A stretch of 64,000 bases of DNA from Haliotis rufescens. Lineage: Eukaryota. The notes beneath the pieces are model-generated. The model saw nothing but the letters and a program-made list of their open reading frames with translations. It made no database searches and was not told the origin of the DNA. The stretch covers positions 39,060,001 to 39,124,000 of the forward strand of contig NW_025964001.1 in the NCBI RefSeq assembly GCF_023055435.1, given 5' to 3'. Both the position numbers and the translations under genes were made by a program. This document shows positions 1,381 to 59,000 of this stretch, in pieces (position 1 is the stretch's first letter; every line of letters starts with the position of its first letter).

Positions 1381-4300
1381 ATGAAAATAGAAAGTATTGC
1401 CACTTCGGAAGAAACGAACATTGCAAGCAATTGCAAGTTTATAACAATTGGGGACAGAATGAAACCTCTTTTGATGTCCATGAAAATATTTGGATTCTAC
1501 TTTGATCCACAGCAGGATAGCAATACATTGGAACAGTCTCAGCATGGACGTAAGAGAATATCTACATGGCTACTGGCATTCTTCAGCCACCGAGTGTATT
1601 GTTACATGGTTCTTCTTTTGCTGTGGTCCAACTTTGTCCGATGTGTTGTTGGCATATTCCCTCTTAATGAAAGCTTACCTTTGATGTTAATCTTCACATC
1701 CTGGTACCTTCAGTGCTCACTGAATGCAACTATTATGATTGTTTCATGTCAAAGACTGAGTCATTTGCGATCCTTCTTCCAACACTGGGATTCGCTTTTC
1801 GACAACAATGTGACAAAAGAAATCGGATGTGGATTCATATGCCCAATTAAGTATTTGAAGGTTGCGACATCATGTGGATGGGCTTTGTTCTTCATCAACA
1901 TTGCTTCAGTTTTTACAATCACTCTTGGCAATTTGTCGACATCGAAGCCTTTCCTTGGTGCCATTGTTCGGCCGTTTCCAGAGGAACAATGGGCAGTCGC
2001 ACTCAGTCTTATCTTGCATTCTTTAAACGCTGGTGCATGGGTATTTCCTGTCATCTTCGTGGTCGTAGTGTCCAGGGTCATCCAGGGTCAGTTCCTCAGA
2101 TTTGGGCAGGTCCTTTCCAAGCAGATCAAGGAAGCAGATGACAACATCCCTGAACGTCTGCCAGAACTGAGATCTCGCTACACACAGCTTTGTCAGGCTG
2201 TGGATATCATCAACAGAACCTTCAAATGGATCCTCGGACTATCGTTGTTCCTTCAGGTTCTCCTGGCCTGTTTTATTACGTATCAGATGATAAATGACCC
2301 TCAGGAGACGTTTACAACTTCTACCCATTTATTTTGGCTTGGAAGTTGTTTTGTGATCATAATATTGCTGACAAGGTGCAGTTCAGATGTACATGACTCG
2401 GTAAGTACACACTTTAATGTAGCTTGTTACTGAATAAACAGGTCGCCTTGGGGTGTGCCAAAAAGTGCCATAATTCAATGTGCGTGATTACGCACAAGAA
2501 TACAGTAGTCTCTGATTATGTTTTTAGGTTTTCCCTCATTTGTTCAACTATGCTATATGCTAGTATGGGTGTGTTTTTCCAAACACCTCTTCCGTCTACT
2601 GTTCATGTTTGAGATATTTGCCCACACACAGACGACTATTTACAAAATCTGTGCATAAATTTGCTGTTTAGATATTTAGCTGCAAAATCTCCTGGGTACT
2701 ACTGTTTCAGGCCCATTCTTTACTGGATGATATTTTCAACATTGGGACAAAAAACGCCACTTCAGAACTTCTAGGTCAGGTGGGTATATATTTCTTGTCA
2801 TATAATACTGGTTCCCAAAGAGAATGTTAATTATTTTTGTTGTGCCCAGAAGCAATGTGAAACCCTGAGGCTGTATTCCCGTAGTTTTGTGAAATTATAA
2901 ACATTATCTTTACTTCATATTATATTGTGTGGATGGATCTTAACCGGCATAGATCACAAAGTACATTTCGATATACACACCTTGAACAAATATAATTTTG
3001 GCTAATGCTTTAGCAGACTGTTTGCCTGAAATCCACTTTTCGTAAGATACGTCAACATTTAGACAAACTGTTTTAACTCCGCAACAAAGTTTGTTAATTA
3101 AATTTGTTATTCTGAACAACACCACTAGGAATGGTACAGTCGAATTGATAGGGATTGCATTAAAAAGTATCACATCTACAATGAATCTGATTGTATTCAT
3201 TTATGATTGAGCCATTTTCATCAATTCTTGCTTACTGTTTTTCAGCTGAACCTCTTTGTCGCCAAGTTGACAGGAACATCCACCGGATTCACGGCCATCA
3301 ACTTCTTTGTCATCACAAACGAGTTCCTGTTGACTGTAAGTTGCAGAGTCAACAACCCATGCCTCTAAATCAAACATTTATCTCGACAATTGAAATCAAT
3401 ATACCACTATGCACAGTGACATGACTAACATGAAATATTGCATGACTTTGTGATATTTTGGAATTGACAAGTATGTTCAACTAACATAAAATATTGCATT
3501 ACTTTGTGATATTTTGGAATTGACAAGTATGTTCGACTGATAAACAAGAAAATTTGGCTTTTCTGTCCTTCACGAGATCATTCCGTCTGAGTCGGTGAGA
3601 GAGTTTAAGTTTTACGTCGCATTGGCATTATATCAGCCATCAAGCGACAAGAAAAAGTTGATATATATATACACAAGTGAGTGATCAATACAAAGTTTTA
3701 TTTAAAAACAAATTTCTCAAACATATGTGGGCATAGCAGCATTATTTATACAGTTTAAAACACGGGCTAAAGGCCACCAGTAACCAAAGCTAGCCCCCCT
3801 CGCTGGGGATCACAGGGAATTACAGTGATCATTATATAGTTCCAAAATGTTTAGGATTATAGGATGATTTGAGGAGCCTGAAGGAAAGACAATGAATCGG
3901 AGTCGATGATGTATTTGTTAGATTTGTTTTGTTTTGTTCGATAGAGGTCAAAGCTGTACAAAAACAGAGAAGAGTGAACTATTATCTTGGGTTCTTGAGG
4001 AGACAGTTTTGGATCAAATGGTTGTGGCACTTTCACTTTTGCAGCCATCCTTGGACCCGTCTGTAAAAATAGATCTATGAGGATTACACTTTGTTCGTAG
4101 CTGGTTGCATTCCTATTAATATTATATAATACCTTTCGGACTTTGTTAACCTGGTTAGAATGGGTCTACTCCTGGCTTAACCATCTGCCAAGGAGGAGAA
4201 GACTGAAGTCGATAAGGTGATATGATATGTTGCTGCTGTGATGTGTGGTTGAATTCTGATTTGAAGTGGTGAAACCAGGTTTGACAAATTTCGAAACGGC

Positions 4301-5752
4301 TTTTCATACAGAGGGTTTGTATGCTGGGATTGACTGATATGGATGTTATTTAGTTATGTATTGCAGTGATATTTTAATGCAGCGTTGTTCGAGAGAAGGT
4401 TCATTAGCTTCCACAAACTGTCCACAGTTTGTTTGTTTCTTGTTTAATGCCGCACTCAGGAATATTCCTGCTACATTGTCTATGACGGCGGACTGTAACT
4501 AATCAACCCGTGAAGATCCGGGTAGAATAGGTCTTCAGCAACCCATGCTTGCCGTAATAGGCGACTGTGCTTGTCGTAAGAGGCGACTAACGGGATCAGG
4601 TGGTCAGGCTCGCTGACTTGGTTGATGCATGTCATTGATCCCGATTGCGTGGAGGAGGCACGGGTGGCGCAGTCGTCTAAGGCGCAGCGATTCGCTGTGC
4701 AGATTTGCGCCCCTTGGACACACCAGAAACCTATGATTGTTGGTTCGAATCCCGGTTCACCCGATTATGTTTCTAGGTTTGTCAGCACCATACCCATGCT
4801 CGTGGGTTTCACCCAAGTGGTAAACGTCTGAGACCTGCATCATTTCGGGCTTTTCTCCCACATTAAGCTGACACGCTGTGATATCACTGGAATACTGTTA
4901 AAAGTGGTGTTAAACCCAACTCGCTCACTCACTCACTCAAAAGTGAATAGTGTTTGTGATTAAGAAAATTTAAAGCCGTTTTCGCCCACCCATATTTTAA
5001 TTTGGTTCAGACAGTTGTAGCTGTCTTCCAATCGTATTCATATATTCTTACTACAGGAAATGTTCAAATCGTCCACAAAAAGTGAACCATCAACACGGTT
5101 GTTCAAAACTTCAGTGAAACTATACTGATGCTAAATCGTGTGACAAATAGGATGCTGCTTGAGGGACGCCCTGATCTTGATGAAATGAGATGAAATTGTT
5201 ATTTAAAAATTGAGATATGAACTGAGGTAATCTGCCCCTCAATCCAAATTCATGCAAATATTTTAAAGTACCATGTTTCCACGTTGTATCATATCATATA
5301 ATGTTGTTTGGTGGCAATGTAATGTTTAATTAAGGATTCTAAACGCTCCAAATCGTCAATGGTACTTCTTGTTTTTTTCGGAAACCACACTGGATGTCAC
5401 TCAGGAGGTTATTGGTCTCCAACCACCAGGCTAATTGAATGTTATCAATACACAATTCCATTTAGAAAGTGGTCAAATGTAACAAACGTTATATTTAGGA
5501 AAACATATTCTCGTGAAAGTACAGATTCAAGTACTTTTTTGGGTGAGTCCCATTCAGGATTTGAACCCACACTCCCAGAGTGAGGCACCTAATCGCCAGT
5601 ACTCAAAGTCAGCGATCTGACCCATTCCATGTACAGGACACCCTTATTATTGCTAACTATCGTTGACTGCCATGTAACTCAACATTCATTCATTTCAGTT
5701 GTGTGGACTGTTCATCACCTACTTCTTCCTCCTGCTGCAGTTCAAGATATAG
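1381..5752 (+). CDS. Gustatory receptor-like (GRL, 7TM ion channel) gene 1; exons 1381-2400, 2711-2779, 3246-3335, 5699-5752; 410 aa
   Basis: Hydrophobic multi-TM exon 1 (MKIESIAT...SSDVHDS|gtaagt). Exon 2 ttcag|AHSLLDDIFNIGTKNATSELLGQ|gtgggt; exon 3 ttcag|LNLFVAKLTGTSTGFTAINFFVITNEFLLT|gtaagt; exon 4 ttcag|LCGLFITYFFLLLQFKI*. The TYhhhhhQF motif and three C-terminal phase-0 introns are hallmarks of the Gr/GRL family. Confidence 0.9.
4425..4652. mobile_element. SINE-like family A, rearranged copy (3' part on -, 5' part on +)
   Basis: 4425-4504 is the reverse complement of the family tail; 4506-4652 starts ACCCGTGAAGATCCGGGTAGAATAGG. Confidence 0.7.
4654..4938 (+). mobile_element. tRNA-derived SINE family C
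   Basis: GGAGGCACGGGTGGCGCAGTCGTCTAAGGCG...GGTTCGAATCCC...GTTAAACCCAAC(TCAC)n; same family as 32077-32362. Confidence 0.8.
5530..5630 (-). mobile_element. Degenerate tRNA-derived SINE head
   Basis: Minus-strand B box GGTTCAAATCC, but no intact cloverleaf. Confidence 0.4.
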
Positions 5753-12308: not shown

Positions 12309-12987
12309 AAGGGAAAGTTTATTTCACCCTCTTGTCATACAGTCTTGTTGACAGTTATTTGTCACTCTGAATTTGTAATCAAAGATCACAGCACGGACAG
12401 GTTATATAGGTCCGTGATCACAGCAAGCTCACTGTCTTGATGAGTTTCAATGGCGAAATGAATAGCACTTAAAGCAGCCGGATTGTGAACGGAATTTTCG
12501 TTGACAAGACTACTAAGGCGTTGCATTTCTTTTCGAAATTGCATCTTAATGTGGATGATATTTTTACCACAAAAACGACAGAAAGTGCCCAAGCTCAAGT
12601 CTCGAACACGCGATTGGGTCCGGAAAAGGTGTGATTGCCGTGAGCCTGAACAGATTGCCTTCAAATTCTGAATGTACAGAACACCTTTAACATTGATGAG
12701 AAACGATAGTAACTGCCCCCTACTATTCTTAACGATTGTTAAGTTTTTGTCATTTATACAATTAGATTGATGACGTCACGCGAGTGTTGTTGCAGTTGAT
12801 AATGAGCCAGGAATTCACCGCCTCTTCTGGACGTGAACTTCAAACAAGTAAAATTGACTATTAGGACATCATACAAAATTATAAAGAAATTATATATCAA
12901 CCAAAACATGATTGAAGTCGGAGTCATCAATCGATTCTGTTCCGGAAGTAGAATCAAAGAGCCCCAACCGATTCACATTATAACACC

Positions 12988-14483: not shown

Positions 14484-14546
14484 TTGAGGGATGTTTTCTT
14501 TGCCATGCAGGTGACCGAATATTATGTTTTGAGGACAAACGCACTC

Positions 14547-14807
14547 GACCCGTGAAGATCCGGGGTAGAATAGGTCTAGGTCAAAGGCTTGCTGCAAAAG
14601 GCGACCATGCTTTTCGTAAGAGGCGACTAACGGGACTAACGTGGTCAGGCTCGCTGACTTGGTTGATGCATGTCATCTGTAATTGCGTGGATCGATGCTC
14701 ATGATGTCAATCACTGTATTGTCTGATCCAGGCTAGATTATTTACAGACCGCCGTCATATAGCTGGAATATTGCTGAGTGCGGCGTTAAACAACAAACAA
14801 ACATACT
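14547..14807 (+). mobile_element. SINE-like family A, full length
   Basis: GACCCGTGAAGATCCGGGG...GCGGCGTTAAACAAC(AAAC)n; TSD AACGCACTC. Confidence 0.85.
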
Positions 14808-15684: not shown

Positions 15685-15685
<1 letters not shown>

Positions 15686-15731: not shown

Positions 15732-15733
<2 letters not shown>

Positions 15734-16530: not shown

Positions 16531-19500
16531 ATGAAAATAGAAAGTGTTGCCACTTCCGAAAGAAAGGACACTGGAAAGTTTATTACAATCGAAGAAAGAA
16601 TGAAACCTCTTTTGATGTCCATGAAACTATTGGGACTGTACTTTGACCCACAGCAAGATGGCAATACGTTTGAACAGTCACAGAATGGACGTAAGAGAAT
16701 ATCTACACGGCTACTGTCATTCTTCAGCCACCGACTGTATTGTTACATGGTTCTTCTTTTGCTGTGGTTCAATTTTGTCCGATGTTTTGTTGGCATATTT
16801 CCTCTGAATGAAAGATTGCCCTTCAGGGTTATTCCTACGTCCTGGTATCTCCAGTGCTCTTTGAATGCAACTATCATGGTTGTTTCATGTCAGAGACTCA
16901 GACACTTGCGATCCTTCTACAACCATTGGGATTCTCTTTTCAAGAACAATGTGACGAACCAAATTGGATGTGGATTCATATGCCCAATAAAGTATTTGAA
17001 TGTTGCGACATCAGGTGGTTGGGTTTTGTTCTTCATCAACATAGCTGCAGTTTTAATAATCTCTCTTGGAAATTTGTCGACATCGGTGCTATTACTTGGA
17101 GATCTTGTTCGGCCATTTCCCAGTGAACGATGGGCAGCCGTACTCAATCTTATCTTGCACACTTTCGACACTGGTGCATGGATATTTCCTGTAATCTTCG
17201 TGGTCGTAGTTTCCAGGGTCATCAAAGGTCAATTCCTCAGATTTGGGCAGGTCCTTTCCAAGCAGATCAAGGAAGCAGAAGACCAAATACCTGATCGTCT
17301 GCCAGAACTGAGATCTCGCTACACACAGCTTTGTCAGGCTGTGGACATCATCAACAGAACGTTCAAATGGATCCTCGGACTATCGTTTTTCCTCCAGGTT
17401 CTCCTGGCCTGTTTTATTTCGTATCAGATGATAACTGGCAAATACGAGATGTTTACAACATTAACTTATTCGTATTGGCTGGGAGGTTGTTTTGTAATCA
17501 TAACATTGCTGACAAGCAGCAGTTCAGATGTACATGATGCGGTAAGTACAGATTTACATGTGCCTTGTGTTCTCTCGCTCCTATTAATTTAGTGACAAAC
17601 ATGTAAAGCTGGAATGGGAGAATACTGAAATATCTTGACCAGGGTGGCTCCAAAGGGACTCGGGCAAAAACGAGTTCCCAGTCGGGTTGCGAAGTCGTCT
17701 AAGGTGTCGTAATTCTTTGCACGGAAGTGTGTGCCTTAGGCACGTCAAAAAACATCTTCCCGAGGCAAGAGAATTAACTAACAATAAAAGTCCCGATTTC
17801 GCCCTTGCCGAACAAGGCTGGTATTATTGAGTTATATTTTGGCTGGACTAACGAGTCCATGCTTAGTCCAATCAAAATCATGCAACGAAATCGAAATCCG
17901 GTTCGTAAACCATCGTGCAACTTTCGGTCGATTGCACCGCAAACTCGTTGTAAACAGATATTTTCCAAATCTTTTCACGTTTTAATCAAGGTGCTCTGAT
18001 GCACCTTGCGATGTAAGACCCGTTTTATCGTTGATTATTGATTAGATCGTCTTGACTTGGCGCCGCCATTTTGTTCGAAGCAAATGCAAGTGATACGAGA
18101 GATGGAATCTGTTTGGTCCATAGGAAAGGCTTAGAAGGGCCATAACTCGTAATAGCCACTGGTGGCGATACTATCGAGCCCAGGAATTCCAGTCTAGTTC
18201 GGCAAGGGTGGAAACTGGTCTTTTAAAGTCAGTTTACTCCCATGCCTCGTGAAGAAGACCAGAAAGCCATGATCGTTGGTTCGAACTCCAGTTCACCCAG
18301 ATCTTGTTTCCAGGTTTGTCAGCACCATACCCGTTCTCTTGGGTTTCACCAAAGTGGTACACGTCTGAGACCTGATAACTGGAATACCAGTTTTAGAAAA
18401 TAATGTCAAAACACATGGATATCCTGTCTTTTGAAACGAGGATAAATAGGCACTGTATCCATGTCCGTAATTTCATCATTTATGACCTGAGCAAATAAAC
18501 AGCTAGGACATTTCAAGTGCCCATCAAGATTGAATATTGTGCGCTTGTTATTTTTCTTCATAAATTACATTTCATAGGGCAAGTGTTGCACCGCCGGCAT
18601 TAAGGCACCCCCTCCCCTTTATAAATGTGTTAAATGCCCCAAATTGACCATGAAGGGCAAATATATCCATTGAAGTAAAATGGTGCACGTAAACAGGGCT
18701 TTAGATTTCGGCAGTTCCTTTCCAAGCAGATAGAGGAAGCAGATGACCACATCCCTGATCGTCTGCCTAAACTGAGATCTCGCTTCGCCCATCTTCGTCA
18801 GGCTGTGAATATCATCCTTAGAACCTTCAAATGGATCCTCAGAATATCGGCTTTCCCTTAAGTTATCCTGGCCCGGGGGGCACGGGAGCCCAGTCGTCAA
18901 AGGCGCCATGATTCGCTGTGTAGAGTTGCGTCCCTTGGGCACGCCAGAATCTTATGATTGTGGGTTCAAATGCCGGTTCGCCCCGACTAATGTTTCTAGG
19001 TTTGTCAGCACCATACCAGTGCTCGTCGGTTTTACTAAAGTTGTAAACGTCGGAGACCTGCATCAATTCGGGCTTTCCTCCCACATTAAGCTGACACGCT
19101 GCGATATAACTGTAATACTGTTAAAATCGGCGTCAAACCCAACTCACCCACTTTAAAGGCAAAGTGCCTGAAGGCTCTTGACTTCTCACTCTCCTGACCC
19201 GTTTTATTTCGTATCAGATCTTAAATGGCCCAAAGGTGATGTTTACAAATGTTACCTGTTCGTTGTCTTAGATGTTGTGTTGTTATCATAATATTGCCGA
19301 CAAGGAGCAGTTAAGATGTGCATGACGCGGTAAGTACACATTGCCGAATACATCACAAGATTCCACTGGTAGGAATGTCACAGACCGACATGGTCCTGTA
19401 CCCGTCTCAGCTCTCGAAATAAAAAAACAACCATGATCAGGTCGCCCATTCAGTTTGTGATGTGTAAGCAGGAATAATACAATCATCATGATGGCAAAAG

Positions 19501-21655
19501 CATGGTCAACGTCTTGTCTTCCAGCTTGTATGCACCAGTCACTGAACAAATAACCGCTGTCTACTGTTCTTGTTTCAGATATCTCAAAACAAAAACGAAA
19601 ATATAAAAAAATCTGTGCATAAGTTTGCTGTTTATATATATTCAGCTGCAAAATGTTCTGGATTATTTTGTTTCAGGCCCATTCTTTGTTGGAGGATATT
19701 TTCCAGATTGGGACAAAAAACGCCACTTCAGAACTTCTTGGACAGGTAGGTATACGTTTTTGGCATACGATACTAGACCCCAAAGGGAATTTTTATTTCA
19801 TTATGTTGTGCCAAGAAGCATCGTCCCAATCAGTTTGGGCCCACTTGGGGTAATGTGGCCTGGAAAATAGGTCCTAAATGGATAGCTCTTTGGGGCTCCA
19901 TTCAGATGTGCCTAAGGGCTCCAACTGGGTCCTGAGTGATAACGTATATATGTGTCTGTGCAATAGTTGTTTCCCGAATACTGACACTAAATAATGCTAA
20001 GAAAGAGTGCACACGTTAAAATAAGTATGTCATCTTTAAGATGAACAATATTGTTGTGCTCAAGAACACAATGAATTCAGGTCGCCTTATTTGATAAATG
20101 TGATGATTTATTTTGAATTTGTTCGTGTTGGATGGTCAAAAAAATGTTTGTTACTTTGATAACACAAACATTCTAGAAAACAGTTTTCAGTCAGCACAAA
20201 GAACTGACAAATGCTTTGATTGTACTTTGTACCTTCATAAACAACACGGAACTGGCATCAGTTCCCATGATGGTGCTTGTAGACTTCTGCGACTTAGGAT
20301 CTTTTCCCGAATGTAAAACAGTTTACTTTATTTAGTGGAAGGCTGAAAAGGTTAGAAGGCTTTACCGAGGAACAAGATCGTGACATCTCTTACCCAAATG
20401 AATTCAAAATGGCGGAAGGTGTCTGGTAAACTGCATTCATACCTTGCTCTGTGTCATTGTGTCTGTGTATGTGACACCTGACTATATGTCGAAACTGAAT
20501 AACAATGGCAGACTCTAAACAGACATGATGCCTCATTCGTCGGGTTACAACACTAGCTTGATGAGGCGCCGGGGCAGAAACGCAGCGCAGAAACGAACGA
20601 AGATGCCTTATGGCCCAGAATAGCTCCCCTTTGATAAAGGACAATAACTTCTCAAAAGGCGATAGATTCATTGAAGTATCACATTTCAAATTAATCTGAT
20701 TGTACTCATTTATGACCGACCTTCGTCATCAATTCTTGCTTACTTTTTTGCAGCTGAACCTCTTTGTCTCCAAGTTGACAGGAACATCCACTGGATTCAC
20801 GGCCATTAACTTCTTTGTCATCAAAAACGAGTTCCTTCTGACTGTAAGTTGCAACGTCAACAATCCATGTCATAAAATGTAACGACTATCGTGGCAGAGG
20901 GTGGCAGAGACATAACTGAAATCAAAATATCACCGTTCATACCATATATACATGGTGTGAAATAGTACATTACTTTGTGATATTTGGACCTTGAAAAGTA
21001 AGTTTGACTGATAACAAGACATGGGTATGTTTATCCCTCACGAGGTTGTCTGTCTGACTGGCGTTTCACTTCCGCACAACTCGGTGGGGATTGTGGGTCG
21101 CATTAAGGTCCCCAGTATGTCATGCTTGCCATAAGATCCAATTAATAAGGATTGAGTTAGATGGTTGCCATTTGACCCAACGGTTGGATCGTTTGTCATG
21201 CAATCTACCACTTGTTGTCTTTATTATACACGAGCCATCGTACTTAAGTTATTCCTAACTGCCATGTAACTGAACATTGATTCATCTCATACACTGTATA
21301 CACCTCAGCATGGCTTGTTTGACTGATCAACAAGAAACTCCTGGGTATGTTTTTCCCTCACAAGCATGTCTGTCTGACTGGCGTTTAATTTCCGCTAAAC
21401 TTGTGGGTCACATTTAGTTCCCAGAATCCCATGCTTGTCATACGATCCGACTAAACTTAGGATTGGGTAACTTGGGTGACGTTGTTCCCAACTGCGTTAA
21501 TCATTTTTCCTTCTCTTTACCACTTGTATATAGATTATGCAAAGGGCAGCATAAGAAAGTTATTGCTTACTGTCAAGTAACTCAACATTCATTCATTTCA
21601 GTTGTGTGGACTGTTCATCACCTACTTCTTCCTCCTGCTGCAGTTCAAGATATAG
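16531..21655 (+). CDS. GRL gene 2; exons 16531-17541, 19677-19745, 20754-20843, 21602-21655; 407 aa
   Basis: Paralog of gene 1 with canonical GT-AG phase-0 junctions. Exon 2 AHSLLEDIFQIGTKNATSELLGQ; exon 3 LNLFVSKLTGTSTGFTAINFFVIKNEFLLT; exon 4 LCGLFITYFFLLLQFKI*. Confidence 0.87.
17755..18258. mobile_element. MITE with ~65 bp imperfect terminal inverted repeats, inserted into a family C SINE
   Basis: TCTTCCCGAGGCAAGAG...CCCTTGCCGAAC versus GTTCGGCAAGGG...CATGCCTCGTGAAGA. Related ends at 24478-24556 and 47330-47560. SINE halves at ~17682-17750 and 18259-18388. Confidence 0.65.
18703..19329 (+). pseudogene. Decayed 3' part of a GRL exon 1 inside intron 1 of gene 2, split by a SINE
   Basis: 18703-18873 reads RFRQFLSKQIEEADDHIPDRLPKLRSRFAHLRQAVNIILRTFKWILRISAFP*; SINE at 18875-19150; 19190-19329 continues to ...CATGACGCG|gtaagt. 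Confidence 0.85.
18875..19150 (+). mobile_element. SINE family C inserted in the decayed GRL exon
   Basis: GGGGGCACGGGAGCCCAGTCGTCAAAGGCG...GGTTCAAATGCC...GGCGTCAAACCCAACTCAC. Confidence 0.8.
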
Positions 21656-22946: not shown

Positions 22947-23303
22947 CATGGATGTCGCTGATGAGGTTGCCTCAATGCCTACAATCATGATGTCCGAGTT
23001 TCTTTATATACAAATTGCTTTGATAGTCAACCTCAAGGTTAAAATCATATTAAACAAATGCAAGCGGGTGGTGTTTCCACTTATTTTGAGTTTAATCGAT
23101 ATTCCTTTCAAATAGTAACGTCTATATTAGTATAATGAATCAAACATTGCAAATAGGTGTCCTGTAAAATGCATGTGATGCACTGACGGCGTCAAGGCAT
23201 GTACTGATAAGCAAACCCAAAAGATGTTGACGACAAGAGACAAGACCTTCAAAGGACTTATGACGATCTGATATAGTTTGAAGCAAAATCAAAATTAAAG
23301 AAG

Positions 23304-38200: not shown

Positions 38201-38690
38201 AGTACTGCATCTCTTGATTTAGAGTTATTGATATGTTTGTAATAAAATGTATCTAGATCTTCGTCCTTTACTAATTTGGAGACACCGCATATGATATCTG
38301 TTTCTAAATCATAAATCAACTTTTTAATTTTCATGTAAAATTCTGGCGTATCAGTATTCGGACCATATACACTCGTTATGCTGATAATTTCATCGTCTAT
38401 CTTTATTTTCAGAATTATGTAATATCCATTATGGCTGTCTTTGATCTCCTCTAATGTATGGATTTCGAAAATATCTTTGAATAATATGGCTAGGCCTCTT
38501 GACTGGCTAGTAAAGGAGCTAAGACGTACTTCTGATTCTTCCCCATTCTAATTTAATCTTCTGTTCGAAGTCGTTTGTAAAATGAGTGTCTTGTACACAG
38601 TATATATTTCCTATATTTCTTTTAGAGGTATTCGAATTCATCTCTTCTCTTCTTTTCATTATTTAACCTTTGATAGGTAAAATTAAAGTA
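35230..38690 (-). mobile_element. Degenerate L1/Tx1-clade LINE ORF2 (endonuclease + reverse transcriptase)
   Basis: Minus-strand motifs CVQDTHF, YGPNTDTPEFY, QARLDFIL, SDHS (endonuclease); RPISLLNTCYKI, RGCRQGDPLS, QIADDT (RT). Many stops and frameshifts. Confidence 0.8.
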
Positions 38691-39025: not shown

Positions 39026-39669
39026 ATTTGTTTCACTCCGGTTAACTATTTGTTTCACTCTGGTTAACTATTTGTTTCACTCCGGTAAACTATTTGTTTC
39101 ACTCCAGTTAACTATTTGTTTCACTCTGGTTAACTATTTGTTTCACTCCGGTTAACTATTTGTTTCACTCTGGTTAACTATTTGTTTCACTCCGGTAAAC
39201 TATTTGTTTCTCTCTGGTTAACTATTTGTTTCACTCTGGTTAACTATTTGTTTCACTCCGGTAAACTATTTGTTTCACTCTGGTTAACTATTTGTTTCAC
39301 TCCGGTTAACTATTTGTTTCACTCTGGTTAACTATTTGTTTCACTCTGGTTAACTATTTGTTTCACTCCGGTAAACTATTTCTTTCACTCTGGTTAACTA
39401 TTTGTTTCACTCTGGTTAACTATTTCTTTCACTCCGGTAAACTATTTGTTTCACTCTGGTTAACTATTTGTTTCACTCTGGTTAACTATTTGAATCGCTC
39501 TGGTAAACTATTTGTTTTCACTCCAGTAAACTATTTGTTTCACTCTGGTTAACTATTTGTTTCACTCCGGTTAACTATTTGTTTCACTTTGGTTAACTAT
39601 TTGTTTCACTCTGATTAACTATTTGTTTCACTCCGGTAAACTATTTGTTTCACTCCGGTAAACTATTTG
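39026..39669. repeat. 22-bp minisatellite TTTGTTTCACTC(C/T)GGT(T/A)AACTA, about 29 copies
   Basis: Direct head-to-tail repeats with no spacers. Confidence 0.95.
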
Positions 39670-43770: not shown

Positions 43771-43929
43771 TGTTGTTTGTTTGTTTATTGATTAACGTCG
43801 CACTCAGCATATATATTCCAGCTATATGACCACCGGATCCCGTTAGTCGCCTCTTACGACAAGCATAGTCGCCTTTAACGGCAAGCATGGGTTGCTGAAG
43901 ACCTATTCTACCCCGGATCTTCACGGGTC
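43771..43929 (-). mobile_element. SINE-like family A, internally deleted
   Basis: 5' GACCCGTGAAG head plus tail on the minus strand. Confidence 0.8.
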
Positions 43930-45341
43930 TGCAGTTTAAGATATATAGAGGGGATGCTAGATCAACAGCTGGGTCTTTCTCACACACTGTGTTGGCAACC
44001 ATGTCTAGAGTATGACAAGGGCAGACATATAGCAAGTAGAATTTTGAAAGCCATGTGCAGATATTGTCTAGTAACATTGTAAAATGTCAATGGTATAAAA
44101 ACAGGTGACTGTTAAATAAAGCAAGCAAAATGTTACTCAACCGATGGTAAAGTGCACATTGTGCACCTACATGTCAGGTCCATTGTGTCACCCACGATCT
44201 TAATGATTTCTAACTGGTTACCGTATACCCATCGTTTAATGTCAAAAAAATTTAATGCCACTGGGATCGTCCACTTAGAAAAGTATGCCAACGTGCGCTG
44301 TAAGATTTACAGCCAACGTCTTTATCTCCGATAAGCCCCAAATCATAAAATAGTTTTTTTCATACGCTACATACCAATCCCTTCCTTAATCACAAACTTC
44401 CAAATACCTATACTAGATTTTGTAAAAAGTCAACTTTCAATATATATGGATTCCAGATCGAAAACAAAATCCGGAGGCGCCACCATCTTGTTTTCCAAAA
44501 GCTGTACGGGTATGTGGGTGTCTGCCCTGGACAAAGATAAAATATGATAAATGATTGCAAGCATGATTCTATTTGTAAATCACTGGTCGGAGGACAGCTT
44601 GATTGATCACTATAGTCCCACGTGAATACAGTGAGTTCGCCATGTCCCCATTCCACAACCCTAGTTCTGTAACTACTGCTAAAACATCTACTGCTAGAAA
44701 AGTCACGCCCTGGCAATTGAACCCGTGGATCTGCATAATCCAAGGTAGAAAAAAATACACGTAGAACATAAACTCTACGTGCACCTTACACTCTACCCTT
44801 ACTCTTCAAAACACCTACTGTCCCTAAACACGATATTCACACCGATTTCAGCTGTTGGGACGACTGCGTCTTGAGTTTGATTTGTATTTGTAATTTTATA
44901 GGAAGATATAACCGAAACGGAGCCAAATGTTTGAAATGCAGTGGTAATTGGATACGAATTGATCAGAACGTTAAGTGCTTTACAAATATTGTTGTGAGCC
45001 ATTGCTTTAAATTGCTTTTCGTTGTGTTTCCTATGGTGTTCAAATTGCTCATGGTATATATACATCAGAGATAAACGAGATATTGTAATGGACAGCATTG
45101 ATTGAACACGCTGTGGGTTATTGCTTGCGCAGTAATTACGTTGTAAAGAGTCAACTTTGTCCGAACATTCCGAGTAATGTAGTTGCTTGTGCGTGTGTGT
45201 CATTTCTAAATTCAAACTATGTTCTGTCGAATTCAAAATAGAATACCACATTGTCAGTTTTGTTTCAACCTGCTTTAATTGTCTAGACTGTCTGGTCCAG
45301 ACTCGAATGTCAGCCCAGCGTCGTATCGCAGACGTATTCGT

Positions 45342-45520
45342 GGGAGTGGCGTTAGCAATTTTTCTCGTGGTTCGATCCCCGAGCCGCATCATACAAAAGA
45401 CGTTAAAATGTGGTACTTGCTATTCTGCCTGGCGCATTACATTCAGGGGATAAACAAAGACTAGTCGGCTGGCTTCACTGTAATGTGTTTGAGTGGGGTA
45501 TCCATGTTAAACTGCTACAT
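45342..45520 (+). mobile_element. SINE family D, degenerate
   Basis: GGTTCGATCCCC...CATACAAAAGACGTTAAAATGTGGTACTTGC...CATGTTAAACTG. Confidence 0.65.
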
Positions 45521-46379
45521 TGTATGTCAATGTGTTAGACACACGCGATATATATAATATTTTCCGATGTCTTTTCAGACTTTTTAGATTGGATTCGTGG
45601 GAATTGAGACCACATATTATTAATACTCTCTGTACATGTGTATTTAGATTTTGTCTGTGTATTAGAACTGATAAATTACTAGTATTGCTGGTAGCATATT
45701 AGACGTATGACTATGTGTTAATTGCTTACTTAAATCCTTCATACTTGTTATATTTGTCTCCGACTTTGGTCAACTGAATTATCTGAGTGGTCTTAATTGA
45801 GTATTGCTCAATTACCTTGTCATAAGGTGTATTTAGCTTGCTTGTTTAGCCGAGAGTTAATAAATCCTTAATCTATCAATGTCAAAGCGCTGTAATGCAA
45901 TCGGCCTGTATATTTAATTATTTCTCGTAATCACGCCCGTTCTTAGTCGCTCCTCTTTGAATGAGGCCTTAATCTAGCTAAGGCGGCAGAATTTGTGATT
46001 AATCACAGTGAAACCAGGTATCTAGATAAATACGGACTCGATCCCACACAGCAAAACCACAGCAAGGATGTTATTTCACTTGGCAACCCATGTCTCTGAC
46101 ACTGTTAAAAACAGTTTTCCTTGTTTTGCTGTACTGATATAAAATGACAAATACTTTTTTCTCATGAAATCGGTGTACCTTGACTGGCACCGAGGAATAT
46201 CTAACGACAACAGACGAGGCAGAATGCTCAGGTAGATTGACAACAATGACCTCTCTGACATAAATAACAACTGGGTTTCATGGCCAATATTTCGTGATCT
46301 GAAAAATGAAAGTAACCAGAAAGGATTGGACAAACTACATTTTACAACTTCTTTGATAGGCATTTAGAAGTTGGAGTAC

Positions 46380-46578
46380 TAAGTAAGGGTACGAATTTAT
46401 GGATGAACAACTCCTTTATTACAATTAAGAGCGACGTTTCGGTGTAGGTTCTAACGCCGTTATCAAGCAAGTGACGAGGCAAAATGCTTGCTTGATAACG
46501 GTGTTAGAACCTACCCCGAAACGTCGCTCTTAATTGTAATAAAGAAGTTGTTCATCCATAAATTCTGATCCTTACTTA
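46380..46578. repeat. ~90-bp-arm inverted repeat of PLE-like terminal repeats, each arm with a minimal hammerhead-like motif
   Basis: Arms 46380-46471 and 46487-46578 are near-perfect reverse complements; each reads TTGATAA-C-GGYGT...ACMCC-GAAA-CGTC...AATAAA. Confidence 0.8.
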
Positions 46579-47563
46579 CATTTTACAAATTGCAATTGTT
46601 TGTGCATTTTCACATTTTGTCACACCCTTCATTTTGGATATGCCATTTCGAATATCCCTTTGCCAGTGTCATCATAAGCTCAGCATTCGTCAATTATGCT
46701 GAGTCAACTTAAAAAGAAATTTTAGGACCAAAACAATGAAATGCCCCCCAATGCGCTGCAAAACGAACATATTTCTTTAACGTGTTTCTTTACCTATACG
46801 TAGCAGAATGTCTGCACATGTACACAACTTACGTACTTCAAAATTAACATATCATTTTTAGTTTCAACAAATGCTGTAAATGCACTATCGTGCCTCTGTA
46901 TTTTCTTTACATCACTTGATTGTCTGTTCTGTTTTCAAGCTGGCGTCCCATGGCAGCAATGCTGAGGTGCGGCGTCATGCAACAAACAAACACCTTTTGT
47001 GCAAATTGTGCAAGAGGTGGGTGTTATCGGTAGGGCAGGACATGCTTTACCTTTTTGCGAACACTGATATATTCACTGATTTTCAGTGATCCATTCATAC
47101 ATATTCCACCACTATTTTACGTTTTACTCACAATGGAATCAAGTTCGACGGATAATTGAGACTGGTTATTCTCTGGCATTGTTTTGTATTTCTTCCATAG
47201 CTAGATGCAGTACATTATGTAGTGAGGAAGACAGAAATTAAAAAACTGGTGCGCCCAGTCAAGACGATCTGGTCAATAATCTAAGATCTATATTGTAATA
47301 TAACGGGTCTTACATCCTGCAGTGCATCAAATCACGTGATCACATTGATTAAAAACATGAAAATATTTGGAAATTATCTGCACATGCTTTGCAGATCCTA
47401 CAGTCGACCGAAATCTGCACGACAGTTTACGAACCGGATTTCGATTTTGTTGCGCAATTTTGACTGGACTATACATAGACTCCATAATACCAGCCTAATT
47501 CGGACAGGCTGGAAACTGGACTTTTATAGTCAGTTTACTCTCTTGCCTCTGGAAGATGGATCG

Positions 47564-47652
47564 CCTTAGTCGCCTCTTACGATAGACATGGTCGCTTTTT
47601 ACGGCCAGCATGGGTTGTTGAAGACCTATTCTACCCCGGATCTTCACGGGTC
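47564..47652 (-). mobile_element. SINE-like family A, 5' head only
   Basis: Reverse complement of GACCCGTGAAG...GGCGACTAA. Confidence 0.75.
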
Positions 47653-47906
47653 TAATGAATAAGTGAGTGAGTTTGGTCTTATGCCACTTGAAGCAACTGT
47701 TATAGTGCAAACCATTTCAATACGTCTCTTTACATTTATCTAATATTCCTATTTGTTTCAATATGTTTCCAAAGTGCACCGAAATTCTATCCTCTTTGTT
47801 TCATGTATACAGCAAACATTCGGCGTATCCCCTCTAAGCATAAGCCCCCTCCGGGCGGGACCCTTAAAACCCCAGCGCTGTCTATAAATGTCAGTTAACA
47901 CCTTAC

Positions 47907-48262
47907 GTTGGTTGGTTGGTTGGTTGTTTTACGCCGCACTCAGCAATATTACAGCTATATGACGGCGGTCTGTAAAATAATCGAGTCTTAACCAGACAAT
48001 CCAGTGATTGATATCAAGAGCATCGATCCTCGCAATTGGTTGGTTGCTTGCTTGCTTTGTTGTTTAACGCCGCACTCAACAATATTCAAGCTATATGACG
48101 GCGGTCAGTAAATAATCGAGTCTGGACAAGAAGAATACAGTGATTGACATCATGAGGATCGATCCACGCAATTAGGATACGATGACATGCATCAACCAAG
48201 TCAGCGAGCCTGACCACCCGATCCCGTTAGTCGCCTCGTACGACAAGCATAGTCGCCTTTTA
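47907..48262 (-). mobile_element. SINE-like family A with a tandemly duplicated 3' half
   Basis: Two consecutive tail/body segments (47907-48040 and 48041-48262). Confidence 0.8.
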
Positions 48263-48302
48263 GCAACTGGTTAATAATACCATTTATGAATATGAAGAAA
48301 AT

Positions 48303-48693
48303 ATGTGGCGCAGAAAAGTTTCTGTTACTACAGGTCTTTCACGCTTCATGCTAATACACACAAAGCTTATATTATGGCAACTAGCATATCTGTACCAAGA
48401 ACAGAGGTCAAGTTTAAAATTTTGTGTTAGTGTTTCATCACGAAACCAAACTTCCAGGGACTGTTTATTGTGTAATAAGCATGCCTTTGATTATGATAAT
48501 CACATCATATTACATTGCGAAGTTCTACTGCAGGAAAGAAATGAACTGTTTTCAACTTTTATTGATCTGCTTGATGTTGAAACCTATGTCCAGTTGGAAT
48601 TGCAAGATGAAGAAGATATGTTGTCATTTTTCTTTGGTGCTGATACTCACTTCTCACAATGTATTGAGATAGTTACATGGGAATCTGTTATAC
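48303..48693 (+). mobile_element. 3' end of a LINE ORF2 (CCHC zinc knuckle), running into the assembly gap
   Basis: CLLCNKHAFDYDNHIILHC...ERNELF...QDEEDMLSFFFG; a second copy is at 1-480. Confidence 0.6.
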
Positions 48694-48829
48694 NNNNNNN
48701 NNNNNNNNNNNNNNNNNNNNNNNNNNNNNNNNNNNNNNNNNNNNNNNNNNNNNNNNNNNNNNNNNNNNNNNNNNNNNNNNNNNNNNNNNNNNNNNNNNNN
48801 NNNNNNNNNNNNNNNNNNNNNNNNNNNNN
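48694..48829. other. Assembly gap (N run)
   Basis: 136 N. Confidence 1.
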
Positions 48830-49181
48830 ATGTACCAAGCTGGCCTGGTCCAGACTCGATTATTTACATGCATATCACATTCAAGAGACAATGACTAAAT
48901 GATTTAACAACATTGAATTGACTAGAAATTATTTCTATTATGGGATGGTATTATTACGAAAACAAAACGATTAAACGGGCTAATTGGGTCAGTTTTAGAT
49001 AATATGCTAATTAATATATATTATGTTTCTTTGACTAATGTCAAGTAGTTTTTACGATTCCTTTGCAATATTCCATCAATATCGCGGTAGGGGATACCAA
49101 ATATGTGCTTCACAAACTTAAGTTCCCTGATACTCCACCATGCCTTAATATATGACAACACATTATTTCCAACTCGCCTAC

Positions 49182-50625
49182 CTGTCCACATTGTTCAAAC
49201 TTGCTTCTTTTGTTCCAAAATGAAAGATGTCGTCGAGAAGGACTGAACGTGAATAAACTTAAAGCGAGTATAAATAATATCAAGGAAACGTTCTTTGGGA
49301 GTGCTTCATTCAGCTCTGTATCTTCATCTTTATTACATAATATACTCAAGTAATAAACGTGTACAATATTCACTTGCCGTATTATGGACATCGGAACTGC
49401 TTATTGCCAGAAGAAGAATGTAGAGGAAACACTCCACGAGCCAGAAGACATTAGTTGCAATGTTGAAGAATCCCAGCGGTATGTCTATTATCCGATAGGA
49501 CAGAACACATGCCAAAAAGGTATTCAACAAGAAACATGTTCCATTTGAAGGCTACGTTGATTATGCCCACGGCCTGACAAAGATGTGTGTAAACCTCAGT
49601 TGTGATGAACGATCAGGGATGGGATCGTTTGCCTTCAGAATCTGCATGGAAAGGGTATTTCTGAATTGAAAGAACTGGGCTCGTGTGACTCGGGAGATTA
49701 TGTTTACGAAGACTAAGGCTCCAGATTGAAACACAAGGTTGGTTGGTTGGTTTGTTGTTTAACGCCGCATTCAGCAATATTCCAGCTATATACAGACGGC
49801 GGTCTGTAAATAATCGAGTCTTGACCAGACAATCCAGTGATTAACATCATGAGCATCGATCCACGGAAATGGGATACGATGACATGCATCAACCTGACCA
49901 CACGATCCCGTTAGTCACTTCTTACGACAAGCATAGTCTCCTTTTACGGCATTCATGGGTTGTTGAAGACCTATTCTACCCCGGATCTTCACAGGTCTGA
50001 AACACAAGGGGGATGAGGGTGAAGTAAACTGAGGAGTTTGACTCGGGAAATGGCCGGACAACGTTAGTTGTGAACTGTTGTAATGAGGGTACATCTGCAA
50101 GCAGGAATGTGCCAACTCCAGACATATTTGCAACAGTGAGAAACCAACCAAATGCGATTCCCAGACTCGCATACCATATACTTAAAAGAGTATATGTGAT
50201 AGGACACTGAAACAGGGAATTCCAATGTTTGTAGCACGATCTCAGAAGAGAAAGTTTCTGGCATGCAACGGTCATAATTGTAGCATTCAGTGCACACACC
50301 AAAATCCATGTGGTCAAAATAATTCTGACCGACAAACCTTCGTTAAGAGAGAACAACCCAAACTACGCCCCGACCAAAATTGAACCACAGTAAGAGTAGA
50401 ATCATGTAACTGTAGTGAGTGAGTGAGTGAGTGAGTGAGTGAGTGAGTGAGTGAGTGACACTGTACTGGTTTGTCGGTGAAATGATAATCGAAGTATAAT
50501 CCAAATATTTTCATAGACACTACGATTGGCTTCAGTTTCTCCTCAATAGAAGTGCATGGGAACTTCGTAGATTCTTTATTTCAAGTGATATGTAGATCAG
50601 AAGCAATTAACGCTTCGACATTCAT
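49182..50625 (-). pseudogene. Inverted GRL pseudogene, closest to gene 4; exon 1 remnant 50625-49378, exon 2 remnant 49248-49182
   Basis: Minus strand reads MNVEALIASDLHIT*NKESTKFPCTSIEEKLKPIVVSMKIFGLYFD..., LNEGLSVRIILTTWILVCALNATIM..., LAISSSDVHNT. It has an in-frame stop, frameshifts, a (CACT)n tract, a SINE insertion at 49739-49997, a GC donor, and a degenerate exon 2 (LDDIFHFGTKEAS...CGQ|gtagg). Confidence 0.88.
49739..49997 (-). mobile_element. SINE-like family A inserted in the GRL pseudogene
   Basis: 12-bp TSD TGAAACACAAGG (49727-49738 and 49998-50009). Confidence 0.88.
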
Positions 50626-52184: not shown

Positions 52185-52226
52185 CATGGTGCAGTTGGGG
52201 AATTGTGTTGTCCTCTCAGAGGATAC

Positions 52227-55606: not shown

Positions 55607-58600
55607 ATGAAAGTTGAAACCATCACACAATCTGGTGTTCACATCACTGGTAATCAAAAGCTGAGCCGGACCCCTTTCACATCCATTGAGGACAAACTAC
55701 AACCAATTTTAATGTCTATGAAAATATTTGGGATTTACTTTGATCCAACACAGGCCAAAAACAAAGTGGAACCATCGGAAACATATACGTCCCAGGAAAA
55801 ACCACCAAGACTGTGGCGCTCCATCAACCGTCTATACTGTTATACGGTTCTCCTCTTACTGTGGTTCAACGTTGGCCGATGTGCAATTGGGGTGTTCCCT
55901 CTTAACGAGGGTTTGCCCCTAAGGATAATTTTAATGACATGGATGTTGCTTTGCGCACTAAACGCTACTATCGTGATCACTGCATGCCAGAAACTAACAC
56001 ACCTTCGCTGTTTCTACAAGCATTGGGATTCCTTGTTCCAGTGCCCTGTTACAGATAGCTTGGGCTGTGGCTTTTTATTTTCACGACATTATTGCAGAGT
56101 TGGTACAGCAGCTGGCTGGTTTGTAAGTCTTGTTAACATTGCTGCTCTCTGCGTCTTCATGTTTGGCAATTTACCCCTGTCACCTGTTTACATCACAACT
56201 TTTGCCCGACCATTCCCAGAGTCACAATTGGTGGTCATCTTCAGCGTTGTCCTGCACGTGTTTCAATCGGGGGCATGGATTTTCCCGATTATATTTATGA
56301 GCATAACTTCTCGAGTCATACGAGCACAGTTCTTTCGGTTCGGACAGGTCCTCTCAAAGCAAATCGAGCAAGCAGACGGACACATCCCTCATCAACTGCC
56401 AGAACTGAGGTTTCGCTACACACAACTGTGCCAGGCTGTGGATATCATCAATAGAAGCTACAAATGGCTCCTTGGAACGTGTTTCATTCTGAATATCTTT
56501 CTGGCCTGTTTTGTGTCCTATGAGATAATCAACGGCCCGTTGGACACTTTTGTCATCACAGTTAATGTATTCTGGCTTGGAGGTAGTGTTGTGTGCATCC
56601 TTGTGTTAGCAATAAGCAGCTCCGATGTTCATGATGCAGTAAGTGTTCTAGAAAATTCGTGAAAAACATTATTTGTCCTTAAGTTCTTTTGTTGTTGTTT
56701 TTGTAAATAGTGTCCAAATTTTGTTAATCGTTCCTTGACATGCTGAATGTTCTTCAAAATAATGTCTTTTGAACAAACAGAACTATTTGCTTCCTCGTTT
56801 TATCAAAGGAAGGAAATTGCATGTCTTGAAGTGCTGACTGAAAAATAGTCTGTCTAAAACAAAATTCCCACAATGCTGCCTCTTGGGTATCGAGAGATGA
56901 CTACCCCGCCACACCGCACGTGTTAGAAGAGGCAGTCAGTTGTACTACCTAAAGATGAATTAAAGATATATGTAAACTATGTATAAAGGTTGACACAAAA
57001 ATCAATTATCTACGCATGAGAGGCTAAACTTGTGTCATGTCACAATTTATAGTATCAGGTTATTTAACATAAACGTTTAATTTTCAGGCTCATTCTCTTC
57101 TGGATGACATATTCAGCATCGGAACACGGGATGCTTCTGTGGAGCAGCTGGGACAGGTATGCTTTGATGTCAACCGTTCAGTATTTTTCAACAAAAATTG
57201 GCAGATATGTCGAACAGGTCCTGAAATGGTGGCCTTTGCTATTAACAGGATTTGGCCATTATTATTTTTCTTGATTTCCATGGAAACAATTTCTGCTTAC
57301 TCTCACAAAGGGGTGGATTTCGTTCCCAGAGCACAACTCAAAAAACATTTAATATCTTTCAACAAAACTTGGCAAATATATCAAACAGATCTTGAAGTCG
57401 TGCATTTTACTATTTGCAGATTTTTGGCATTTATATTTTTCTCGATTTCCATGGAAACAAATCAGACTTAGTCTCAAAAAGGGTGGGGGTAGGTGTCGTT
57501 TCCGTAGCACAGCTTGAAAACTGTGAAAGACTTTTCATCCAAACCTAGTACATGTATTAACCGGAGGCTGAAGTGGTGCCTTTTGCTATTTAGGAATTTC
57601 CCTCTTTCCATGGAAACATGACTTACCTGAAACGGAGCCAGGGGGGAGTTTCCGGATCAGAACTAAAATGTATTAATCAAGGGCTGAAGTGGTGCCTTTT
57701 GCTATTCGGGATGTATTTATCACCAATTTGATGGTCGAGCATCTTTGTGATTAGTTTGGACGAAAGGTTAGAGCCATGGATCCTCCAGTACACAATCTAA
57801 AAGAGTTGACCCAGGTATTGCATGCAGAATGGCAACACATCCCTCAGTTAGGGATCTGATTTTGAGCATGAGGGGACGTCCTGCGGATTTCATTTGTGTA
57901 CGGGGTGACAACACCAGATACTGACTAACACTGTTGATCATTTAACTGTGACATGGGTACAACGTTACTAAGACACGTACCAATACTGCCTCTATTTAAC
58001 TCCAATTACAGTTCTTGTAGTTGCTGGCGAAAAAAAGATGCTTTGTTGCTCACATTTCCTGTTATTCAGTAAACTAACATCTTGTTTGACATCAAGAAAC
58101 AGTTTCCAGCTTCTGCTTACCTATCTCGTTTCTGATTATCAAGCAATCTTGGTGGTGCGATACTTTTGACGATGTGCATATGCAAGTTAACAGGAATATT
58201 CAACATACTTATCTTACCCTTGGACATATGTATGGCTCGTCTCACCTTCTGGCTTACCTTATGATACACACTTGTAACTTATGACCTAGGATTGTATTCA
58301 GAGACACATGAGATATCAATTTCCATTTGAAAAGGTAAGTAAACATCAAAATATGAAATTATACACATAGAACTATTAGCTTTTGACGTTACTCTCTTTT
58401 CAGCTTAACCTGTTTGTGTCGAAATTGACAGGCACATCCATTGGGTTCACAGCTATTGACTTCTTCGTCATCACTAAAGAGTTCTTACTGACTGTAAGTA
58501 TGACTTTATGGCACAGTCAATGTTCTGATCGAAAAGGATCCCGCAATGGGATCATGGTGACATACCATCGGTTCAGTCACAGGGTCATCCGATCAAACAA

Positions 58601-59000
58601 ATGGGTGATGAGGACCTATTCTGGCCGAGACCCCAAGGGGTCATAATGCAACAAAGACTGATTGTGAGAGTGAGTTTGGTTTAACACCAATTTGATCTGT
58701 ATGACACATATAAAACGGCGTATCAAATTCATGAGGATACTTTAAGAACGGTGCTGACAAACCAAGTAGCATAATCAGGGAGAATATGGGATATGTTCTG
58801 GCAAGCCTAGGGGACGCACGTCAAAAAGAAGACTGTGCTACATTTTCTGATTATATAGGTTTATTAGTAGTTATAAACGCATAGTTATCATCAGTACTCT
58901 GTTCAGAGAAGTTCTTGGTCCTTCTAATTGCCTCCTGTTTCAGCTGGGTGGACTGTTCATGACCTATTTCTTCCTCCTGCTCCAGTTCAAGATAGCCTGA
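55607..59000 (+). CDS. GRL gene 4 (most divergent paralog); exons 55607-56638, 57088-57156, 58404-58493, 58944-59000; 415 aa
   Basis: Exon 1 MKVETITQ...SSDVHDA|gtaagt; exon 2 AHSLLDDIFSIGTRDASVEQLGQ|gtatg; exon 3 LNLFVSKLTGTSIGFTAIDFFVITKEFLLT|gtaagt; exon 4 LGGLFMTYFFLLLQFKIA*. Confidence 0.9.
57727..57925 (+). mobile_element. Tc1 transposase C-terminal fragment in intron 2 of gene 4
   Basis: VEHLCD*FGRKVR...PPVHNLKELTQVLHAEWQHIPQ...GDNTRY*. Confidence 0.65.

Follow-up and report, generated by a model that had tools for sequence, protein, structure and literature searches.

A tandem array of gustatory-receptor-like ion-channel genes in the red abalone, Haliotis rufescens

Chemical cues govern feeding and settlement in the red abalone, Haliotis rufescens, a species of commercial and ecological importance. 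The stretch of DNA analysed here, a window of 64,000 nucleotides, carries several similar spliced genes. It raises the question of which family these genes belong to and whether they could form a repertoire of chemoreceptors. The window covers part of a tandem array of red abalone genes from the ion-channel family of the insect taste and smell receptors.

Intact genes and decayed copies

The gustatory-receptor-like (GRL) genes, the decayed copies, and an assembly gap lie in the window as follows:

1381–5752, + strand: g1, intact GRL, 410 aa; exons 1381–2400, 2711–2779, 3246–3335, and 5699–5752 (including the stop)
16531–21655, + strand: g2, intact GRL, 407 aa; exons 16531–17541, 19677–19745, 20754–20843, and 21602–21655
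18679–19329, + strand: psiB, relic of the final third of exon 1 (aa 229–337), located using tblastn and blastn
28570–34296, + strand: g3, intact GRL, 407 aa; exons 28570–29580, 30102–30170, 33701–33790, and 34243–34296
48694–48829, no strand: assembly gap of 136 N, downstream of psiA in the direction of psiA and outside all four intact genes
49187–50625, − strand: psiA, a pseudogene in inverted orientation, from the g4/d1 clade; relics of exon 1 (50625–49378) and exon 2 (49240–49187)
55607–59000, + strand: g4, intact GRL, 415 aa from 55607; exons 55607–56638, 57088–57156, 58404–58493, and 58944–59000

Each intact gene comprises four exons and three phase-0 introns with canonical AG/GT borders, and each encodes a protein with the C-terminal end TYFFLLLQFK. 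In the six-frame translation of the window, the pattern TY-x5-QF occurred four times, as compared with 0.67 expected from composition; all four occurrences were TYFFLLLQFK on the + strand, at 5717, 21620, 34261, and 58962. The predicted proteins, of 407–415 aa, fall within the range of ~350–500 aa that is characteristic of the superfamily (PMC7746228). RefSeq proteins were identical exon by exon to g1 (XP_048259664.1), g2 (XP_048259371.1), and g4 (XP_046339200.2). The last of these models begins at an in-frame ATG 22 codons upstream, giving 437 aa, and is identical from residue 23. Full-length analyses were performed using these public proteins, g3 being represented by its exons only. All exons of g3 are open with AG/GT borders. 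The protein nearest to g3 was XP_071079093.1 of H. cracherodii (93%), and no H. rufescens member was found in its 90% protein cluster. A DDE_3 transposase remnant lies within g3 intron 2 (3530 nt); apart from a DDE_3 remnant, no credible Pfam family was found in the intergenic open frames, including 61155–61904, 44802–45419, and 38167–38547.

Of the decayed copies, psiA contains in-frame stops, internal deletions, two or more frame changes, and a SINE-like insertion of ~260 nt at 49734–49994. Exon 1 holds all of the lesions that make it a pseudogene, and they lie >680 nt away from the assembly gap. The gap starts 357 nt past the exon 2 relic, the expected site of exons 3 and 4. These exons were not found in a search of 44000–49187 and were therefore either lost or are hidden in the gap, whose flanks showed no GRL sequence and no sign of continuity. 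A stop-free stretch at 48264–48899 was discarded as an artefact because N had been read as X.

The second decayed copy, psiB, sits inside g2 intron 1 (2135 nt) and is 80–86% identical in nucleotide sequence to exon 1 of other copies, based on tblastn and blastn. It is broken by two in-frame stops, a single frame change, and a repeat insertion of ~308 nt at 18874–19181, and its GTAAGT donor survives at a site 347 nt upstream of exon 2 of g2. Two alternative first exons for g2, of the kind known from Gr39a or Gr28b, were considered and rejected, since psiB consists of nothing but a broken 3' fragment. The comparisons with psiB suggest a chimeric origin for g2. Weak GRL-like matches on the minus strand at 23175–23285 and 12455–12627 (E 0.007 to 0.6) were not counted as copies.

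An earlier note, made from the letters of this DNA, had described four intact spliced genes and two decayed copies in a mollusc-like host, with all intact genes ending in TYFFLLLQFK and having three phase-0 introns close to the C-terminus. The exons, their borders, and the lesions of psiA and psiB bore this out, as did the exon-by-exon matches of g1, g2, and g4 to RefSeq, and H. rufescens is a mollusc.

Family membership and predicted fold

Four lines of evidence, the Pfam match, the fold, the TM7b motif, and the three phase-0 introns at the 3' end, support the assignment of these genes to the GR/GRL (7TM ion channel) superfamily. The full-length proteins scored 55–67 bits against Pfam 7tm_7 (PF08395), for which the cut-off is 26.6 bits, and positions 3–368 of the 370 in the profile were covered. 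The values for g1 and g4 were 58.4 and 58.3 bits, respectively. The TM7 motif of the superfamily, (T/S)Yhhhhh(Q/K/E)(F/L/M), is present as TYFFLLLQF in all eight intact copies of the array. The three phase-0 introns, a superfamily trait (PMC9998090), were found in every copy, and two distant abalone GRLs encoded on other contigs also have them, along with exons of the same lengths, 69 and 90 nt. Finally, a profile of the abalone family matched Gr64a at E 7e-16, with the TYFFLLLQF motif in register with that of Gr64a, as well as OR28, MhOR5, Orco, Gr43a, and BmGr9.

The predicted structure of g1 resembles insect OR and GR structures. This AlphaFold (AF2) model had a pLDDT of 87.4 and a pTM of 0.86; a run on 13 close sequences yielded a pLDDT of 52.7 and was set aside. 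The model contains helices S0–S7b, S7 being divided into S7a and S7b. In a Foldseek search, all 23 matches at E≤0.001 were chains of insect ORs, Orco, or GRs (TM scores 0.63–0.74). The intracellular loops of the model exceed the extracellular loops, as is typical of the superfamily: EL1, EL2, and EL3 comprise 8, ~20, and 4 aa, respectively, and the cytoplasmic parts of S2–S3, S4–S5, and S6–S7 are long. Based on the model, the N-terminus of the abalone GRLs may be intracellular, the inverse of the GPCR topology; topology cues are the full-length superposition on solved OR and GR chains and the K/R-rich extensions of S2, S4, and S5. Pfam, fold, motif, and introns thus agree with the identity proposed earlier, that of the insect Gr/Or superfamily.

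We did not file the abalone genes in the insect sugar-receptor subfamily (Gr5a/Gr64). Gr64a is the best PDB match, and the match of the full-length proteins to Trehalose_recp (45–48 bits, cut-off 21) is partial, covering the C-terminal half only (profile ~200–401 of 410). Exon 1 of g2 alone scored 27.3 bits against 7tm_7 and 28.5 bits against Trehalose_recp. Names of the type 'sugar taste 64a-like' given to orthologues are automatic best-hit labels and are no evidence for sugar sensing.

Extent and turnover of the array

The array, located on a red abalone chromosome, extends beyond the window and comprises eight intact and at least four decayed copies across ~115 kb; the window holds four of the intact and two of the decayed members. 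Using a mollusc/hemichordate profile, we found at least 35 GRL loci in the H. rufescens genome, spread over several arrays. This profile was far more sensitive than Pfam 7tm_7, which yielded only six loci. In the databases searched, public H. rufescens protein models exist for g1, g2, and g4 only, leaving five of the eight intact copies without one.

Comparison with H. cracherodii revealed 1:1 orthologues plus lineage-specific duplicates, and intact orthologues occur in H. cracherodii, H. asinina, and H. rubra. The lineage-specific duplicates, the decayed copies, and a putatively chimeric gene support turnover by birth and death, as had been proposed for this cluster. The accompanying claim of a recent expansion holds for copies u2, u4, and u5 outside the window, for which dS is ~0.02. 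It fails for g1–g3, for which dS is 0.25–0.31, older than the split between H. rufescens and H. cracherodii.

Nor could the earlier suggestion of an undescribed family be upheld, because mollusc GRLs had already been published (Robertson 2015, as cited in PMC7746228; PMC5850775). In addition, g1, g2, and g4 are RefSeq models, and the H. cracherodii orthologues bear the label 'gustatory receptor family protein 3-like'. GRLs have been known in Mollusca since 2015, and most of the present genes are predicted in public annotations. As a genomic observation, the array is expected.

Constraint and possible roles

We consider it probable that the array encodes chemoreceptor GRL channel subunits with the OR/GR fold, differently tuned and subject to purifying selection and turnover. 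By homology to BmGr9, Gr43a, MhOR5, and Orco, four subunits would assemble into a cation channel, with S7b lining the pore. Structures of BmGr9 have revealed what the T, Y, middle hydrophobic, Q, and F residues of the motif do (PMC11100771). By analogy, T400 would form a hydroxyl ring, Y401 would contact lipid, L404 would act as the inner hydrophobic gate, and Q407 and F408 would constitute the outer gate switch. The ligand site would occupy the outer half of S2–S6, the region in which the paralogues differ most, and binding would shift S5 and S7b to open the pore. The array would then represent chemoreceptor subunits that differ in their tuning; purifying selection would maintain it, and duplication, deletion, transposon insertion, and pseudogenisation would drive its turnover.

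The paralogues diverge mainly in helices S3, S4, and S6, in their outer halves, and in the outer loops. The mean pairwise amino-acid difference was 0.31–0.41 in S3, S4, and S6 and 0.63 in EL3, as compared with 0.085 in the cytoplasmic S4–S5 region and 0.03 in the nearly invariant pore helix, S7b. An unlikely alternative, although one with precedent, is that these true GRL channels have a non-chemosensory role, for example in patterning during development or in the sensing of light, oxidants, or internal metabolites; such roles are documented for some non-insect GRLs (PMC7746228). However, variable outer helix halves combined with an invariant pore are typical of environmental receptors, and so are gains and losses by lineage within a tandem array and a genome-wide total of at least 35 loci. 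This pattern is unusual for single conserved genes with housekeeping or developmental roles. The GRLs of specialised role in PMC7746228 belong to the same superfamily and are single or few genes, whereas the abalone genes form an expanding and decaying tandem repertoire.

The substitution rates also bear on whether the array is mostly a silent, decaying remnant, its frames open only through the youth of the duplicates. In exon 1, dN/dS was 0.40–0.42 among g1–g3 and 0.16–0.18 between these and g4. In the 3' exons, dN was far below that of exon 1 at a dS of similar order, mostly somewhat lower; therefore, their conservation is mostly attributable to selection and not to gene conversion, and some homogenisation may have acted alongside it. 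At least four of the 12 copies are broken, dN/dS is near 1 for u2, u4, and u5 (with few changes), and the intact copies that lack a public protein model would likewise suit a remnant. Nevertheless, this reading is very improbable: g1–g3 and g4/d1 have remained open across dS of 0.25 to >1.5 at dN/dS of 0.16–0.5, their orthologues are intact in three other Haliotis species, and all eight copies retain the pore motif. An origin in an unrelated 7TM family such as GPCRs, with the 7tm_7 match due to composition, can be dismissed: exon 1 alone scores close to the cut-off (25–35 bits, with g3 at 35), but the full-length scores, the motif, and the intron architecture agree with GR/OR, and the next Foldseek matches beyond OR, Orco, and GR chains were at E>0.1 and TM≤0.17, with GPCRs only at E>0.2 and TM ~0.15.

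Returning to chemoreceptor subunits as the preferred reading, the pattern of constraint makes a working chemoreceptor repertoire plausible. That the array and the at least 35 genome-wide loci together constitute a working ionotropic repertoire with subunits tuned to waterborne cues is a more tentative proposal, to which we give somewhat less than even weight. Candidate cues would be algal feeding or larval settlement signals. No mollusc GRL with a known ligand, tissue, cell type, or current was found in the literature searched. With a pore that is conserved and pocket helices that vary, this compact array offers a practical set with which to begin de-orphanising mollusc GRLs and, if the repertoire is indeed a working one, would be the first chemosensory GRL set outside arthropods that is functionally tractable.

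Among insect GRs with solved structures (Gr64a and Gr43a of D. melanogaster and Gr9 of B. mori), Gr64a was the best sequence match, and identity to the abalone GRLs was only 10–16%. ORs are an insect-specific branch of the GRs. Insect ORs and Orco (MhOR5, AaegOR10, AgamOR28, and Apocrypta Orco) share the abalone fold and were the top Foldseek matches; the pore helix and the cytoplasmic anchor region are conserved between them and the abalone GRLs. In contrast, the abalone tree contains no single conserved co-receptor similar to Orco, since both clades carry lineage-specific duplicates. The nearest relatives outside Haliotis (phmmer E 1e-55 to 1e-30) were mollusc and hemichordate GRLs of the same family, from Biomphalaria ('odorant/gustatory chemosensory receptor-like 122'), Patella, bivalves, Ptychodera, and Glandiceps. 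Their identity to the array in the window was at most 32%, and the latter forms a Haliotis-specific clade.

Gene models, host and family membership

Six-frame translation of the window contained four occurrences of TY-x5-QF, versus 0.67 expected from composition, and all four read TYFFLLLQFK on the + strand. In g1, g2, g3 and g4, the intact + strand gustatory-receptor-like (GRL) genes, this motif stands at the gene end; behind a large exon 1 (337-344 codons) come three further ones (69, 90 and 54-57 nt). Exon borders were AG/GT throughout and all three introns were in phase 0, in agreement with the four gene models of the earlier note. The predicted splice junctions rest on canonical sites, conservation among paralogues and species, and identity with RefSeq models.

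Public proteins matched by the window genes (g1, g2 and g4 compared per exon)
g1: H. rufescens XP_048259664.1, identical
g2: H. rufescens XP_048259371.1, identical
g4: H. rufescens XP_046339200.2, identical from residue 23
g3: no public H. rufescens protein in the databases searched; best match an H. cracherodii protein, 93%

The H. cracherodii protein nearest g3 bears the name "gustatory receptor family protein 3-like". Exon 1 of g3 as query matched no proteins outside Haliotis. Based on the exon-1 protein matches and the identical H. rufescens proteins, the host is a vetigastropod mollusc; the same note had proposed a non-insect, mollusc-like animal, and two of the checks it suggested, a Pfam 7tm_7 search and a structural comparison with Orco/BmGr9, gave matches, as follows. 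Full-length tests were performed using the public proteins identical to window genes. These matched 7tm_7 at 55-67 bits (profile 3-368/370), and exon 1 by itself scored 25-35 bits (cut-off 26.6). The full-length proteins also matched Trehalose_recp in their C-terminal half. AlphaFold performed poorly with 13 close sequences (pLDDT 52.7); using 49 diverse relatives, it predicted helices S0-S7b with a pLDDT of 87.4 and a pTM of 0.86. Foldseek against the PDB yielded 23 matches at E<=0.001 (TM 0.63-0.74), all to insect OR/Orco/GR chains: MhOR5, AaegOR10, AgamOR28, Orco, Gr64a, Gr43a and BmGr9. Further matches had E>0.1 and TM<=0.17. The family profile matched Gr64a (E 7e-16), with the TM7b motifs aligned in register. 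Features used in the literature to define the family (PMC7746228; PMC9998090), namely length, the presence of seven TM helices, asymmetric loops, a TM7 motif and introns at the 3' end, are all shown by the abalone genes and their products. The putative inside-N topology of the proteins is assigned by homology only.

The array genes are rightly identified and belong to a known kind of gene family. The proposal of an undescribed family did not hold, as mollusc GRLs are in print (Robertson 2015, cited in PMC7746228; PMC5850775). Outside Haliotis, the closest relatives, at most 32% identical, come from Biomphalaria, Patella, bivalves and hemichordates and are likewise GRLs. Annelids have small GRL sets with cephalic expression (PMC11730519). 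A literature search for Haliotis GRLs found no paper. The array map, the probably chimeric g2 and g3, an intact gene lacking a public protein model in the databases searched, are new but modest.

Array layout and turnover

All close copies genome-wide fall in a single array, C223 39018411-39132926, where 8 are intact and at least 4 decayed; on this contig the window spans 39060001-39124000.

Array members in contig order
u1: decayed; codon 2 is a stop, without 3' exons
u2: intact
u3: decayed; exon 1 frameshifted
u4, u5: intact
g1: intact
g2: intact; psiB, a + strand exon-1 relic, lies within its intron 1
g3: intact
psiA: inverted (minus-strand) pseudogene of the g4/d1 clade
g4, d1: intact

Both decayed copies that had been reported in the window, psiA and psiB, were recovered. 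The intact members u2, u4, u5 and d1 lie outside the window (G000:C223:39027023-39052091 and 39129682-39132926). No H. rufescens protein for these or g3 was present in the protein collection searched; they may be unannotated, or carried in the annotation as pseudogenes. The copy tree has two clades, g4/d1 versus all others. H. cracherodii has 1:1 orthologues of array members, that of u1 being likewise truncated. Among the lineage-specific duplicates are g4/d1, u2/u4/u5 (dS about 0.02) and, in H. asinina, several others.

psiB is separated from the downstream g2 exon 2 by 347 nt, equal to the usual intron 1 length, and this spacer shows homology to g1 intron 1 at its 3' end. Accordingly, g2 is most likely a chimera in which its own exon 1 was apparently fused to 3' exons that had belonged to a truncated neighbour. 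An alternative-first-exon locus was rejected, psiB being only a broken 3' fragment.

None of the four intact genes overlaps the assembly gap of 136 N (48694-48829). The family sequence closest to it is the psiA exon-2 relic (49240-49187, minus strand), 357 nt away, with the gap downstream of it in the psiA reading direction. Neither exon 3 nor exon 4 of psiA was found in 44000-49187; both were either lost or concealed by the gap, whose flanks contained no family sequence and no sign of continuity. A stop-free stretch spanning the gap was an artefact of N translated as X.

A profile search of the genome detected at least 35 exon-1-type loci, distributed over several arrays, on C605, C556, C124, C575 and other contigs. 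Two distant loci share 69- and 90-nt phase-0 exons with the array genes. Divergent GRL tandem arrays of like exon layout occur at C605 28.61-28.97 Mb and 11.80-11.83 Mb, C556 58.95-59.00 Mb and C124 3.40-3.46 Mb. Very weak GRL-like fragments may be older relics: 23175-23285 and 12455-12627 on the minus strand, with E values between 0.007 and 0.6, and one beyond the window, at the contig position equivalent to 66007-66087 (E 7e-5).

Predicted pore and pocket

For BmGr9, a specific role has been assigned to every TM7b motif residue (PMC11100771). By motif alignment, T400 would form the pore hydroxyl ring, Y401 the pore-lipid contact, L404 (the middle hydrophobic residue in BmGr9) the inner gate, and Q407/F408 the outer gate switch. 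These five residues were invariant across all 8 intact copies.

Mean pairwise amino-acid difference among paralogues
EL3 (outer loop): 0.63
S3, S4, S6 membrane parts: 0.31-0.41
S7a: 0.09
Cytoplasmic S4-S5 part: 0.085
S7b (pore helix): 0.03

Judged from sequence, these regional differences are the pattern of a putative common channel core with a diversifying pocket. For exon 1, dN/dS was 0.40-0.42 within g1-g3 and 0.16-0.18 versus g4. Relative to exon 1, the 3' exons had far lower dN at dS of similar order, mostly somewhat lower; their conservation therefore stems mainly from selection, perhaps with some contribution from gene conversion.

Repeats and other sequence in the window

A stop-free stretch of 250 codons downstream of g4 (61155-61904, +) had no match in Pfam. 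An open frame in g3 intron 2 (32708-33088, minus strand) weakly matched DDE_3, a Tc1/mariner-type transposase (24.7 bits); this remnant likely explains the intron's length of 3.5 kb. A SINE-like repeat of about 150-230 nt is abundant in introns and intergenic sequence on both strands, its copies being 77-95% identical, and one copy breaks psiA exon 1.

Copies of the SINE-like repeat
4427-4653, 14545-14676, 27136-27284, 29735-29861, 43827-43928
Further copies: 47559-47651, 48163-48262, 49860-49996, 60550-60697

A tandem repeat at 39026-39669 comprises 29 copies of a 22-nt unit (91% matches), and the sequence around it, between window positions 36 and 40 kb, has a low GC content of 0.33 and an AT skew of -0.19.
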